Below, piece after piece: positions 40,601 through 43,600 of a stretch of DNA of 64,000 nucleotides. Where the stretch lies: the NCBI RefSeq assembly GCF_006345805.1, contig NC_042997.1, positions 208,692,001-208,756,000 of the forward strand. Reading direction: 5' to 3'. Every line of letters begins with the position of its first letter. The first letter of the stretch is position 1. The DNA is from Octopus sinensis. Lineage: Eukaryota. The notes under the pieces are model-generated. The model searched no databases. It was not told the DNA's origin and saw nothing but the letters and a program-made list of their open reading frames with translations. The translations under genes were made by a program, and so were the position numbers.

Positions 40601-43600
40601 CAAACTCGGTTAACTTTTATACATGTATGTATGTATGTATGTATGTATGTATATACTGATGACCTGGCCCTCATAGCAGAATCACTACCAGAACTGGAGA
40701 AGAAATTTCAGGTGTGGAAGCAAGGTTTAGAATCGAAGGACCTTAGAGTCAATGTCGTAAAGGCCAAAATTATAGTAAGCTGGAAGGCGAACACATCACA
40801 CACCTCTTCAAGTGGGTAGCCCTGCTCAATCTGTAGAAAAGGTATAGGTAGAAACCCCATAAGATGTATCCAGTGTAAGCTATGGACACATAAGAAGTGC
40901 AGCAACATCAAAGGAAGATAGCTTTTGTGTGCAGCAGATGCATGGGGCAATAAACACCGCAGATGCTCAGAAAACAGATTCCATCACATGCCAAGGGGAG
41001 AAACTAGAAGTAGGTGATAGCTTCTGCTATCTGGGTGACCAAGTCTGTAGTAGGGGTGGATGCTTAGAGAGTGTTACCACTAGAATAAGAATAGCCTGGG
41101 CAAAGTTCAGACAGCTTCTACCCCTACTGGTGAGAAAGGGTCAGTCGCTCAGAGTGAAAGGTAGATTGTATGATGCATGTGTGTGAACTGCCATGCTACA
41201 TGGCAGTGAAACATGGGCTGTGACTGCTGAAGACATACATAGGCTCGAAAGAAATGAAGCTAGCATGATCTGCTGGATGTGTAATGTCAGTGTGCACACA
41301 CGACATAGTGTAAGCACCCTGAGAGAAATGAAATATTAGACATAAGAAGCATTGTATGTGGCGTGCAAGAGAGATGTTTGCGTTGGTATGGTCATGTACT
41401 ACGGATGGATGAGGAGAGTTGTGTGAAGAAGTGCCACTCCCAAACAGTTGAAGGAATATATATATACAGTTTTATTCAATAACGAACCAACAACAATACC
41501 TCTTTCTTTACTACCCACAAGGGGCTAAACACAGAGGGGACAAACAAGAACAGACAAGGGGATTAAGTCGATTATATCGACCCCAGTGTGTAACTGATAC
41601 TTAATTTATTGACCTCGAAAGGATGAAAGGCAAAGTCGACCTAGGCAGAATTTGAACTCAGAACGTAACGGTAGACAAAATACTGCAAAGCATTTCGCCC
41701 GGTGTGCTAACGTTTCTGCCAGTTCGCAACAATACCGTTTATGTCCACTTACTTGGTCAGCAAAAAACAAGCCTTTATTTCTTTCTCTTTGGGCACATGT
41801 TTGGTAATATGTGTAATTCTCATGCATGCCATATTGAAAATCGCGATCGCAGTCTCCACCTTTGCACTTCCCGGTATTGGTTGGTATGGTTCTGTAAGAA
41901 GAAGAAAAAGAAGGAAGCTTGAATCTATATGTGTGTGTGTGTGTGTGTGTGTGTATACTCTCTTTACTCTTTTTTACTCTTTTACTTGTTTCAGTCATTT
42001 GACTGCGGCCATGCTGGAGCACCACCTTTAGTCGAGCAAATCGAACCCGGTTCTTATTCTTTGTAAGCCCAGTACTTATTCTATTGGTCTCTTTTGCCGA
42101 ACCGCTAAGTGACGGGGACGTAAACACACCAGCATCGGTTGTCAAGCAATGCTAGGGGGACAAACACACACACATACACATATATATATATACACATATA
42201 TACGACAGGCTTCTTTCAGTTTCCATCTACCAAATCCACTCACAAGGCATTGGTCGGCCCAGGGCTATAGCAGAAGACACTTGCCCAAGATGATACGCAG
42301 TGGGACTGAACCCGGAACCATGTGGTTGGTTAGCAAGCTACTTACCACACAGCCACTCCTGTGCCTATACATATGTATACATATGTATACAAAATAAGAA
42401 AATGGAGAAATACATCTTAGTCAATATTCAACTACCAGATAATACCCAATCACATAATTTATTAACCAACTTCATATGAACATTAAGGTCAAACATAATA
42501 GTATAGAACAAAACAATGAAGGCTTGTTTGTTGCTGACCAAGTAAGTGGACATAAATGGTATTGTTGTTGGTTCGTTATTGAATAAAGCTGTATATATAT
42601 ATTCCTTCAACTGTTTGGGAGTGGCACTTCTTCACACAACTCTCCTCATCCATCCGTAGTACATGACCAAACCAACGCAAACATCTCTCTTGCACGCCAC
42701 ATACAATGCTTCTTATGTCTAATATTTCATTTCTCTCTGACAGCAAATTAGGTTCTCTTCACTTTAATACTTTAGAACTTTACCATTATTGTTTTGAAGT
42801 AAAGGACTACCAACTCATAAAGAGAGAGAGAGAGTCTCTACATGGTTAAATAATTTGCTAGAAATGTCAGCCACATCTCATTTCATTCTCTGCTGTCTTA
42901 AAAATGGAGACTTGAGTCATATATAAAACTGAAATTCTAGATACAATAAGCTTAAACAAAGCTAAATTATTGTTATACTTGGGGACGGTCATTTTGCCAA
43001 TCAACACACACACACACTTCTTATTTGATCCTTACAGTAGCTTCATTATTGTTATCATTATTATTATTATTATTACACTTAGCTTATTAGTCAGAGCCCT
43101 TTTGTTACACATTCTGTGACCCCTTCAATGATTATCTGTTTTCCATGTCTCTTCTTCTAGAAGAGAAGATATAGAGAACAGACAGTCATTGAAAAGGTCA
43201 CAAAATGTGTGACAAATGAAGGAGAATAAAGTTCAAGTGAAGAGCAAATAACTGTGTGTGTGTGTTTATTGTCAGAAGATGACCCTCCCCAAATCTAACA
43301 ATATCTCTTTTACCACATAATCTCACATCAGGATCTTTCAAAACAAATCCATAAACATAAAAGAGATGAGTTGTTTATGAAACAAGGCAACTACAAATAA
43401 TAAAGAACAACAAAATCCAAGGCAGATGTTCATGGAGACAGGCACAGGAGCGGCTGTGTGGTAAGAAGCTTGCTTCCCAAACACTTGGCTCCGGGTTCAG
43501 TCCTACTACGTGACACTTAAGGCAAGTGTCATCTACTCTAGCCTCGGGCCAACCAAAGCCTTGTGAGTGGATTTGGTAGACGGAAACTGAAAGAAGCTTG

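Follow-up and report, generated by a model that had tools for sequence, protein, structure and literature searches.

The DD3-3 locus

The 64-kb window considered here, by which we mean the whole stretch of Octopus sinensis DNA that was analysed, carries exons of the DD3-3 gene on its minus strand. The coding sequence in the window is an exact substring of O. sinensis XP_029642903.1. Joined together, the exons encode 466 amino acids, with an identity of 99% to O. sinensis DD3-3 and of 50-76% to the DD3-3 proteins of a wide range of phyla, and they match 244 to more than 2700 DD3-3 proteins. Pfam returned no family on the exon peptides, DD3-3 being without a Pfam model, and a literature search for DD3-3 in octopus found no paper.

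The features discussed below are centred on one 139-nt exon (Table 1), for which the AG acceptor, the GTAAGT donor and the length were all verified. Its end encodes an invariant R-N-x-G-L motif, and the exon is real and conserved. The first-pass annotation of this DNA had called it exon 3. It is indeed the third in the window, and both its coordinates and its donor were given correctly, but it is not the third of the gene; at least two further DD3-3 coding exons lie upstream of the window, and this is probably the fifth coding exon. The same annotation pointed out that skipping a 139-nt exon would shift the reading frame, and we find that the shifted frame meets a stop codon 3 codons into the exon after next. 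The exon is included in all four annotated octopus protein models, which come from three octopus species, and the two isoforms of Octopus vulgaris DD3-3 differ only at the C-terminus. The protein collection held no transcript-derived protein fragments for this exon, and exact look-ups of 11 window ORFs around the locus found none on record. The exon peptide alone yielded no candidates against a set of 5.8 billion proteins, the query being too short. The best short homologue (P0008) proved to be of sponge metagenome origin and was useless for synteny.

Table 1. Positions of the features at the DD3-3 locus (window coordinates unless another locus is named).
Feature	Position	Strand	Remarks
Non-LTR retrotransposon fragment (C-terminal reverse transcriptase)	40631-41455	+	antisense to the gene
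Parental segment, distal helix	41321-41500	-	downstream intron; pairs with 42558-42737
SINE-like insertion, 226 bp	41501-41726		splits the parental arm; would bulge from the hairpin
Parental segment, proximal helix	41727-41784	-	pairs with 42510-42567
5' splice site GUAAGU	41747-41752	-	wholly inside the proximal helix
DD3-3 coding exon, 139 nt	41753-41891	-	encodes (K) and 46 residues; third exon in the window
Candidate ADAR site, first A of AAA (Lys150)	41776	-	opposite C in the copy, 5' U; edit would be K to E
Hairpin loop	41785-42509	-	725 nt
Inverted copy (right arm)	42510-42737	-	upstream intron, 619-846 nt before the exon acceptor
Following DD3-3 exon	29971-30087	-	intron 30088-41752 contains the distal parental arm
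Preceding DD3-3 exon	50604-50699	-	intron 41892-50603 contains the copy
Inverted copy in O. vulgaris	L006 31922-32149		orthologous to 42510-42737
SINE in O. vulgaris	L006 32943-33168		orthologous to 41501-41726

Structure of the inverted repeat

An inverted duplication of about 224 bp had been proposed here, and both a repeat search and local alignment bear it out: the right arm is the reverse complement of 41321-41500 plus 41727-41784, with 5 mismatches in 222 bp (97.7% identity overall). The two reverse-complementary copies are 725 nt apart and both lie within the DD3-3 transcription unit. In the distal part, 41321-41490 aligns with 42737-42568 over 170 nt with 2 mismatches, or over 180 nt at 99% if the ambiguous 10 bp of a target-site duplication (described below) are counted. 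In the proximal part, 41727-41778 aligns with 42567-42516 over 52 nt with 3 mismatches; going on to 41784/42510 lengthens this to 58 nt at 91%. The geometry originally described for the hairpin, with a helix of some 54-58 bp over the donor, a SINE bulge, 170 bp more and a loop of about 725 nt, is thus the one that we find. Of all inverted pairs in the window this one is the most similar by a wide margin, the only other of at least 93% identity being a SINE pair with its members 6.3 kb apart.

In the pre-mRNA the copy is antisense to the end of the exon, the donor, the start of the next intron and the LINE fragment. The proximal parental segment covers the donor together with the final 26-32 nt of exon on one side (41753-41784) and intron positions +7 to +26 on the other. 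In the distal one, a 3'-truncated LINE fragment (41321-41455) is joined by an (AT)n run and by intron sequence that is unique. The loop contains the remainder of the exon with its acceptor, to which the 3' end of the upstream intron adds a (GT)n run along with two SINE-like repeats.

Origin of the copy

The LINE fragment is truncated at its 3' end, at 41455, inside the reading frame, and its final 135 bp belong to the duplicated segment. In other copies of this LINE family the reading frame goes on beyond the point at which both arms turn to (AT)n and unique sequence, so the LINE must already have been truncated when it was copied. The left arm runs on into the LINE at one side and into the conserved exon at the other, whereas the flanks of the right arm are single-copy intron sequence, no empty-site paralogue of them having turned up in the window or at the loci of O. 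vulgaris, Argonauta and Sepia. These relationships show the direction of copying, with the exon-side arm as the parent and the intronic 42510-42737 as the copy, and the earlier description of the copy as locally born stands.

Since 135 bp of each arm is LINE fragment, and further copies of the family lie nearby, one of them specific to O. sinensis, the arms might be thought to be two independent, opposite insertions of one transposable element, or the product of LINE-mediated 3' transduction. Against this, the shared segment extends about 90 bp past the LINE, and that part, which includes sequence of the conserved coding exon, is found only in the two arms. Both arms also share a single internal truncation point, identity to the other members of the family is only about 79%, as compared with 97.7% between the arms, and a LINE lacking its 3' end would not be capable of normal mobilisation. 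Nor does the copy look like a retroposed one: its borders show no direct repeat of 7 bp or more, hence no target-site duplication, and no A-rich or microsatellite tail. The reading as two insertions is, in our judgement, already refuted by the presence of exon and unique sequence within the repeat, and we give it next to no credence. The absence of a target-site duplication and of a tail from the copy, combined with the 3'-truncated LINE junction that it shares with its parent, argues for copying at the DNA level. By exclusion, the most likely route is a template switch in replication or templated break repair. An RNA-mediated copy of an edited transcript was considered and rejected, as the 5 differences between the arms are 3 transitions and 2 transversions, with no cluster of A-to-G changes.

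The SINE-like element that interrupts the parental arm had been described as a later insertion, and this is confirmed. It is flanked by a 10-bp direct repeat, CAACAATACC (41491-41500 and 41727-41736), that constitutes a target-site duplication. The right arm has a single copy of this decamer, without the SINE, and so represents the empty site. It is a multi-copy short element, with at least 10 other copies of its family in the window at 72-91% identity. ARAGORN found no tRNA-like gene in the 226-bp element, leaving a tRNA origin without support. The SINE was inserted after the duplication and before the split of O. sinensis and O. vulgaris.

At one position the copy reads GTT (Val) and the present exon TTT (Phe); O. 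bimaculoides has Val at this site, while Argonauta and Sepia have Ile. The order of events was the duplication, a G-to-T change in the exon (Val to Phe), insertion of the SINE into the parental arm and, last, the split of the two species. In the first of these, about 224 bp were copied in reverse into the intron before the exon, 0.62 kb upstream of it. The segment ran from the last 135 bp of the truncated LINE through some 70 bp of unique intron and the donor to the final 26-32 nt of the exon.

Comparison with other cephalopods

The orthologous locus in O. vulgaris is collinear with the window at 98.2% identity, and both arms and the SINE are found there at orthologous sites. A look at the locus in other octopus species had been among the checks suggested in the first-pass annotation. 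As O. sinensis and O. vulgaris have the structure in common, the duplication must predate their split. Neither the Argonauta nor the Sepia locus has the inverted copy. An inverted repeat of this kind might be suspected of arising from a fold-back chimera or mis-joined read, given that chimeric long reads can yield inverted duplicates and that the window does contain an N run (4479-4578). That run is the only one, however, and is not close to the repeat. The arms are moreover set apart from each other by 5 substitutions and the 226-bp SINE, with 725 nt of unique sequence between them, and the same structure, with private substitutions, occupies the orthologous site in an independent assembly, which rules out an artefact of assembly. 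The first-pass annotation had taken the same position, and we regard the artefact as effectively refuted, with hardly any probability left to it.

Between O. sinensis and O. vulgaris we counted 4 substitutions in 228 positions of the copy and 1 in 206 of the parental arm. Together (5/434) these do not depart from the background of the locus (306/21962, or 1.39%; p=0.84), although the power of the comparison is low, with only about 6 substitutions expected. Four of the mismatches between the arms are common to both species, one is specific to O. sinensis and four to O. vulgaris. All nine of these post-duplication changes open the helix and none is compensatory. Mismatches older than the split are concentrated near the donor, with 3/52 in the donor-proximal helix as opposed to 1/170 in the distal one (Fisher p=0.04). 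Selection may have loosened the helix at the donor, in which case the structure would have an effect in vivo, but the clustering could equally reflect error-prone synthesis near the end of a template switch. The protein encoded by the 139-nt exon differs by a single amino acid between the two species. The structure as a whole has persisted undeleted in both species for about twice the age of their split, an observation that counts against the neutral reading given next.

Most likely, the hairpin is losing its pairing at the neutral rate and has not been, or has not yet been, taken up by selection. We think it rather probable that the locus as a whole is a young, DNA-level inverted segmental duplication in Octopus DD3-3, a neutrally evolving accident with incidental effects at the RNA level. 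The more ambitious proposal of the first-pass annotation, a functional editing-complementary sequence or a switch for splicing and nonsense-mediated decay (NMD), is neither supported nor refuted: the arms change at the background rate, every change opens the helix with none restoring pairing, and all four protein models include the exon.

Predicted fold and possible consequences

In silico, the unspliced DD3-3 RNA can fold into a long hairpin over the donor. The minimum-free-energy structure of 41300-42760 on the minus strand (-657.6 kcal/mol) contains the whole helix. For the proximal helix the duplex energies are -77.4 kcal/mol (O. sinensis) and -72.7 kcal/mol (O. vulgaris), for the distal helix -309 kcal/mol, and for the pairing between U1 and the donor -7.9 kcal/mol. 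In the nascent transcript the copy is made first and may pair with the end of the exon and its donor as these emerge, so that a 58-bp helix is followed by a SINE bulge and then by 170 bp more of helix. Young inverted repeats that lie close together are the main ADAR substrates across metazoans (PMC9989829), and RNA editing is extensive in coleoids (PMC5705066, PMC6881472). From what is understood of ADAR and spliceosome biology, we would expect promiscuous A-to-I editing of both arms, with up to roughly twelve adenosines of the exon affected along with positions +3 and +4 of the donor, and some competition with U1 for the donor; these would lead in turn to some exon skipping (with a frameshift, an early stop codon and NMD) or back-splicing. 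Editing, exon skipping and circular RNA are all plausible products of the hairpin and, if it is a neutral accident, would be by-products of it.

Possible RNA editing

The copy could also be a newborn editing-complementary sequence, retained since it directs ADAR to the codons of N149, K150, D156 and Q157, with the 170-bp distal helix serving as an ADAR-recruiting "editing inducer". An intronic complement does pair with the exon end, 42510-42541 with 41753-41784, and the helix continues over the donor. Known editing-inducer layouts have a long perfect helix adjoining a shorter imperfect one, which the arrangement here resembles. Coleoids are known to recode extensively (PMC5705066). The four codons AAU, AAA, GAC and CAA had been listed as candidates for editing, and this list can be refined, as known ADAR preferences make the first A of AAA (41776) the best single candidate: at codon position 1 of Lys150 there is an A-C mismatch with a 5' U, common to both species. 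Residue 150 is K, R, T, M or E across phyla, suggesting that Glu would be tolerated there. N149, D156 and Q157, on the other hand, are conserved residues, and recoding of these is more likely to be harmful. A near-perfect duplex of 224 bp is also a substrate that ADARs edit promiscuously rather than selectively, and high editing in octopus is a feature of neural tissues. It has been argued that coleoid recoding is mostly non-adaptive (PMC6881472), and the arms show neither constraint above background nor compensatory changes. We therefore see only a slight chance that the copy has been retained for editing.

A more elaborate version has a recoding site caught at its birth: the duplication would have supplied at once the exon complement and the 170-bp ADAR helix, an A-to-G change in the copy would then have produced the A-C mismatch and made 41776 a high-level K-to-E site, and editing or melting of the helix, according to temperature or ADAR level, would gate the inclusion of a frame-shifting exon. 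We consider this model a long shot.

Possible roles in splicing, circular RNA and small RNA

Alternatively, the hairpin might be a splicing device that sequesters the donor or brings the flanking introns together, resulting in regulated skipping (and so NMD and lower DD3-3) or in a circular RNA, with temperature or ADAR level possibly tuning the stability of the helix. The donor would be entirely within a helix of -77 kcal/mol, as against -8 for its pairing with U1, and skipping yields an early stop codon. If full occlusion carried a cost, one would expect pre-split mismatches to cluster in the donor-proximal helix, as they do (p=0.04). The distal helix joins the upstream intron (42568-42737) to the downstream one (41321-41490) through 170 nt of complement with 2 mismatches, a layout favouring exon circularisation. 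In this connection, 30-40 nt of complementarity suffices for circularisation (PMC4201285), and inverted Alu pairs have been reviewed as drivers of skipping and of circRNAs (PMC11263572). Speaking against a device of this kind, every annotated isoform in three octopus species includes the exon, the protein is well conserved, with one amino-acid difference in the exon between species, and there is no sign of constraint in the arms. A donor buried in a helix is also a poor one for back-splicing. Classic experiments on hairpins and splicing, furthermore, indicate that proteins and helicases often pre-empt long-range hairpins in vivo, and here 725 nt separate the arms. On balance we think a splicing device unlikely.

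The hairpin might finally be an intragenic hairpin-RNA (hpRNA) locus, its 224 bp being diced to endogenous siRNAs against DD3-3 or the LINE family. In plants, young miRNA genes come from the inverted duplication of part of a target gene. Hairpin-RNA loci of Drosophila have the same origin (PMC10317233), and the DD3-3 structure is likewise a long, nearly perfect hairpin from inverted duplication of a gene fragment. It holds just 26-32 nt of mature mRNA sequence, however, is present only in the unspliced nuclear precursor and has no separate transcription unit, and ADAR editing would antagonise dicing. Rfam gave only sub-threshold, miRNA-like matches to unrelated palindromes in 40000-44500. We regard a small-RNA role as very improbable.

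Comparison with known systems

The nearest parallel for the pairing itself is the R/G-site hairpin of GRIA2 (GluA2), with intronic editing-complementary sequences more generally, where, as in DD3-3, an intron pairs with the end of an exon and its 5' splice site. In such an arrangement editing must precede splicing and could influence it. In GRIA2 the complement is in the downstream intron, the hairpin is short (about 70 nt) and imperfect, it is conserved across vertebrates and one defined adenosine is edited. In DD3-3 the complement is in the upstream intron, 725 nt away, the helices are of 58 and 170 bp and nearly perfect, editing is a prediction, and the structure is only as old as the O. 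vulgaris species complex and apparently evolves neutrally.

Editing inducer elements, reportedly described by Daniel and co-workers, are long intronic hairpins that boost editing at a nearby site. DD3-3 has in common with them a long near-perfect helix (170 bp here) adjoining a shorter one with coding adenosines, but the known inducers are self-contained intronic hairpins apart from the edited stem, and in DD3-3 the editing is a predicted one. The stem-loops at MAPT exon 10 and SMN2 exon 7 (TSL2) also place RNA structure over a 5' splice site, where it competes with U1. These stems are local (6-20 bp, with small loops) and have proven effects, while the DD3-3 helix is long-range, of at least 58 bp, and its effect is a predicted one.

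Primate IRAlus resemble DD3-3 in being two young reverse-complementary copies within about 1 kb of each other, in one transcription unit, flanking an exon. They are the textbook target of ADAR hyper-editing, and skipped exons and circRNAs can result from them (PMC11263572, PMC4201285, PMC9989829). IRAlus come from two insertions of a dispersed repeat; DD3-3 has one local duplication, its arms sharing a LINE truncation junction and the two-copy sequence of about 90 bp with the exon, and one arm holds the exon end and the donor. Young plant MIRNA genes and Drosophila hpRNA loci differ in being separate loci in which both arms are copied and the product is processed by Dicer, whereas in DD3-3 one arm is the working gene and the hairpin exists only in the gene's own precursor.

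Implications

Nothing yet shows the hairpin to be useful, and an inert hairpin would be just another neutral structural variant in an intron rich in repeats. The origin of the double-stranded RNA structures that guide editing in coleoids is largely unknown, and the DD3-3 locus is a case with a clear before and after: its structure was created in one step, can be compared with relatives that lack it, and can be dated to after the ancestral state of the Val-to-Phe change and before the SINE insertion and the split of O. sinensis and O. vulgaris. It also serves as a natural test of whether covering a donor with a 58-bp helix has any effect in vivo when 725 nt of loop must be bridged. Should the recoding site at 41776 prove real, the locus would provide a dated example, specific to one species complex, of how the recoding sites of coleoids and the structures behind them originate, and would be an example of editing-coupled control of splicing as well.

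Anatomy of the inverted repeat

The inverted repeat behind the predicted hairpin over the splice donor of the 139-nt exon of DD3-3 discussed here (the focal exon) is real and locally born. The first-pass annotation had described a 224-bp inverted duplication with five or six mismatches; repeat search and gapped local alignment agree on the repeat, and the alignment gives five mismatches: two in 170 nt of distal pairing (41388 and 41470) and three in 52 nt of donor-proximal pairing (41737, 41764 and 41776). Homology between the arms tapers off across 41779-41784, the opposite border is abrupt at 41321/42737, and the spacer is 725 nt. 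When the window was compared with itself, no other inverted pair came near it in similarity, the sole other pair at 93% or above being two SINE copies 6.3 kb apart. The window has one run of N (4479-4578).

Coordinates of the inverted repeat, the DD3-3 exons and the O. vulgaris orthologous features
Feature	Position	Orientation	Size	Basis or remark
Distal arm pair	41321-41500 / 42558-42737	inverted	180 nt	repeat search, 99% complementary
Donor-proximal arm pair	41727-41784 / 42510-42567	inverted	58 nt	repeat search, 91%
SINE-like insert	41501-41726		226 bp	left arm only
DD3-3 exon	56538-56449	-		tblastn
DD3-3 exon	50699-50604	-		tblastn
DD3-3 focal exon	41891-41753	-	139 nt	tblastn
DD3-3 exon	30087-29971	-		tblastn
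DD3-3 exon	27040-26903	-		tblastn
DD3-3 exon	24315-24137	-		tblastn
DD3-3 exon	21784-21551	-		tblastn
DD3-3 exon	10753-10583	-		tblastn
DD3-3 exon	about 1673-1440	-		tblastn
O. vulgaris copy	L006 31922-32149			orthologous position
O. vulgaris focal exon	L006 32778-32916			orthologous position
O. vulgaris SINE	L006 32943-33168			orthologous position
O. vulgaris distal parental arm	L006 33169-33348			orthologous position

The element interrupting the left arm behaves as a SINE in sequence comparisons, with at least 10 further copies in the window (72-91% identity, both orientations). A tRNA-like gene was looked for in the element with ARAGORN and not found. The direct repeat CAACAATACC lies on either side of it, and the right arm has a single copy of this decamer, thus preserving the empty site, as expected from the earlier proposal of a later insertion into one arm.

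The host gene

Nine minus-strand exons of DD3-3 were mapped in the window by tblastn with full-length relatives. Joined and translated, they show 99% identity to XP_029642903.1, "protein DD3-3 [Octopus sinensis]". Once the splice sites are set exactly, the predicted peptide is contained letter for letter in that protein. Where the O. vulgaris and O. sinensis proteins differ (G, W, R, V), the window has the O. sinensis residues, which identifies it as O. sinensis. The coding sequence for residues 1-49 lies beyond the window on its upstream side; in O. vulgaris and Argonauta this part takes up two or more additional exons, so the focal exon, previously numbered 3, is third in the window but probably the fifth coding exon of the gene.

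The focal exon has an AG acceptor after a pyrimidine tract, a GTAAGT donor and a single open frame. Joined to exon 29971-30087 it gave 244 protein matches, the best 67% identical over 99% of the query, and the R-N-x-G-L at its end is invariant among the matching proteins; a profile-free scan gave 839 relatives. Translation without the exon bears out the frameshift predicted for skipping, with two stop codons three codons into the exon after next. The exon is present in all annotated protein models of O. sinensis, O. bimaculoides and O. vulgaris. Two O. vulgaris isoforms (P0377 and P0378) differ at the C-terminus only, one being without the transmembrane tail and possibly a secreted form; both have N-termini truncated relative to O. 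sinensis.

The gene spans about 26 kb in Argonauta, at least 92 kb in the O. vulgaris model, 113 kb in O. bimaculoides and 138 kb in O. sinensis, and the intron following the focal exon measures about 560 bp in Argonauta versus 11.7 kb in O. sinensis, so repeats have greatly enlarged the introns. This downstream intron holds the distal parental arm; the copy sits in the 8.7-kb intron upstream. Also in the downstream intron is a nearly full-length non-LTR retrotransposon (36070-38930, plus strand) with endonuclease and reverse-transcriptase ORFs, and a partial copy 34 kb away (3278-4128) is 94.6% identical, which suggests recent activity of that family. A trinucleotide low-complexity run (30088-30720; by frame poly-His, poly-Asp/Gly or poly-Met/Val) adjoins the acceptor of exon 29971-30087, and the intron between that exon and 26903-27040 has a tandem array at 27723-28329 (period 100 bp, 94-98% identity). 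An ORF of 179 aa at 25248-25787 resembles, by eye, the C-terminal half of a putative Tc1/mariner-type transposase. A near-perfect palindrome of about 115 nt (43101-43216) shares the copy's intron; Rfam gave only sub-threshold miRNA-like hits to it, scoring about 35 bits where the gathering cut-offs are 68-100.

Origin of the copy

The left arm runs leftward into a plus-strand non-LTR retrotransposon fragment and rightward into the conserved focal exon. An ORF at 40631-40819 shows similarity (E=2e-4) to the C-terminal part of RVT_1; beyond it the retrotransposon frame continues. The window contains two more members of this LINE family, at 62474-63163 and 44963-45412 (about 79% identical), whose frame stays open beyond "VEG"; at that point both arms change to (AT)n and sequence unique to the arms within the window. 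As both arms leave the LINE at the same point, it was already 3'-truncated before the block was copied. The block, 224 bp long, comprises LINE remnant, unique intron, splice donor and exon end. At the copy borders we found neither a target-site duplication nor a tail, the flanks are single-copy sequence, and there is no A-to-G bias among the five arm differences. On these grounds we rejected retroposition and LINE 3' transduction, and also two independent transposable element insertions, since the arms share the truncation together with unique intron, donor and exon end. By exclusion, the copy would have been made by a DNA-level template switch or templated break repair.

Copy and exon encode differing residues. 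The exon now has Phe where the copy has the Val state; the residue is Val in O. bimaculoides and Ile in Argonauta and Sepia, so the G to T change in the exon came after the duplication. Lys is universal in cephalopods at the other site, which places the A-to-G change at 41776 on the copy side.

Predicted structure in RNA

Folding of 41300-42760 (minus strand) predicts, in both minimum-free-energy and centroid structures (-657.6 kcal/mol), the complete two-part helix that had been proposed, with the SINE as an internal branch and the 725-nt spacer in place of the suggested loop of about 730 nt. The distal helix is computed at -309 kcal/mol and the donor-proximal helix alone at -77.4 (-72.7 in O. 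vulgaris), the U1-donor duplex at -7.9. Transcription reaches the copy first and the exon end 725 nt later. The acceptor of the copy-bearing intron precedes the pairing stretch of the exon by only about 110 nt, and so the transcript should still carry the copy by the time that stretch is made.

Adenosines enclosed by the helix lie in exonic codons GAA, AGA, AAU, AAA, GAC and CAA and at donor positions +3 and +4. The A at 41776, preceded by U and mismatched with C, sits in the context that established ADAR preferences favour most; candidate editing there would give K150E. Were the final exon A (41753) edited, CAA|GU would become CAG|GU, an improved donor context. Another A-C mismatch has its A on the copy side (42557), facing intron position +16.

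ADARs in animals act chiefly on young inverted repeats that lie close together (PMC9989829), and editing is extensive in coleoids (PMC5705066, PMC6881472). Inverted repeats flanking an exon can yield skipping and circular RNAs, 30-40 nt being enough for circularisation (PMC4201285, PMC11263572). From the fold and this literature we infer the behaviour of the hairpin in RNA, and an adaptive editing-complementary sequence and a splicing switch are both less probable readings than a by-product.

Age and divergence

The O. vulgaris locus L006 (GCA_951406725.2, OX597814.1) is collinear with window 43981-40000 at 98.2% and carries both arms and the SINE at orthologous positions. This independent assembly of another species rules out an assembly artefact, against which the first-pass annotation had argued from the mismatches and the one-arm SINE, and it dates both events, duplication and SINE insertion, to before the two species parted. 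The 1.43 kb at 43982-45413 have no counterpart in O. vulgaris, where the corresponding site (L006 30672/30673) is plain (AT)n. They contain a LINE, truncated at its 5' end, from the family that supplied the arms' LINE piece, and tandem repeats at about 43.9-44.7 kb. They are an insertion private to O. sinensis, made into a microsatellite some 1.25 kb away from the copy; this LINE is oriented like the copy and would be a weak (79% identical) competitor for parental-arm pairing.

In Argonauta hians (L007) the orthologous exon lies at 7334-7472 of the compact 26-kb gene, and no second, inverted match to it was found in that locus. In the Sepia pharaonis homologue (L005) the intron falls at the identical place, after ...ADQ, and the exon end showed no inverted repeat. 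The structure is confined to a lineage comprising at least O. sinensis and O. vulgaris.

Four arm mismatches are common to the two octopuses (41470, 41737, 41764, 41776), one (41388) is private to O. sinensis, and four are private to O. vulgaris (partners of 42703, 42683, 42618 and 42543, the last facing the +2 U of the donor). No pairing-restoring change was found among the arm differences of either species. Between the species, the copy differs at 4/228 positions, the parental arms at 1/206 and the SINE at 4/226, against a background of 306/21962 (1.39%) over the aligned locus, and the arm rate is no different from background (p=0.84; low power). The shared mismatches amount to four in 222 bp (1.8%) and the interspecies divergence to 1.39%, which would make the duplication, as a rough estimate, twice as old as the split.

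Pre-split mismatches are concentrated in the donor-proximal helix (3/52 versus 1/170, Fisher p=0.04), which sits uneasily with pure neutrality, although with post-split changes included the difference is not significant (4/52 versus 5/170, p=0.22). Relaxation of a costly helix, error-prone synthesis near the template-switch end, or chance could each be the cause. By the low-power test the structure appears to be decaying at the neutral rate, and the best-supported reading is of a neutral or mildly deleterious accident in this octopus lineage, which would bring incidental hyper-editing and may bring some mis-splicing of DD3-3.
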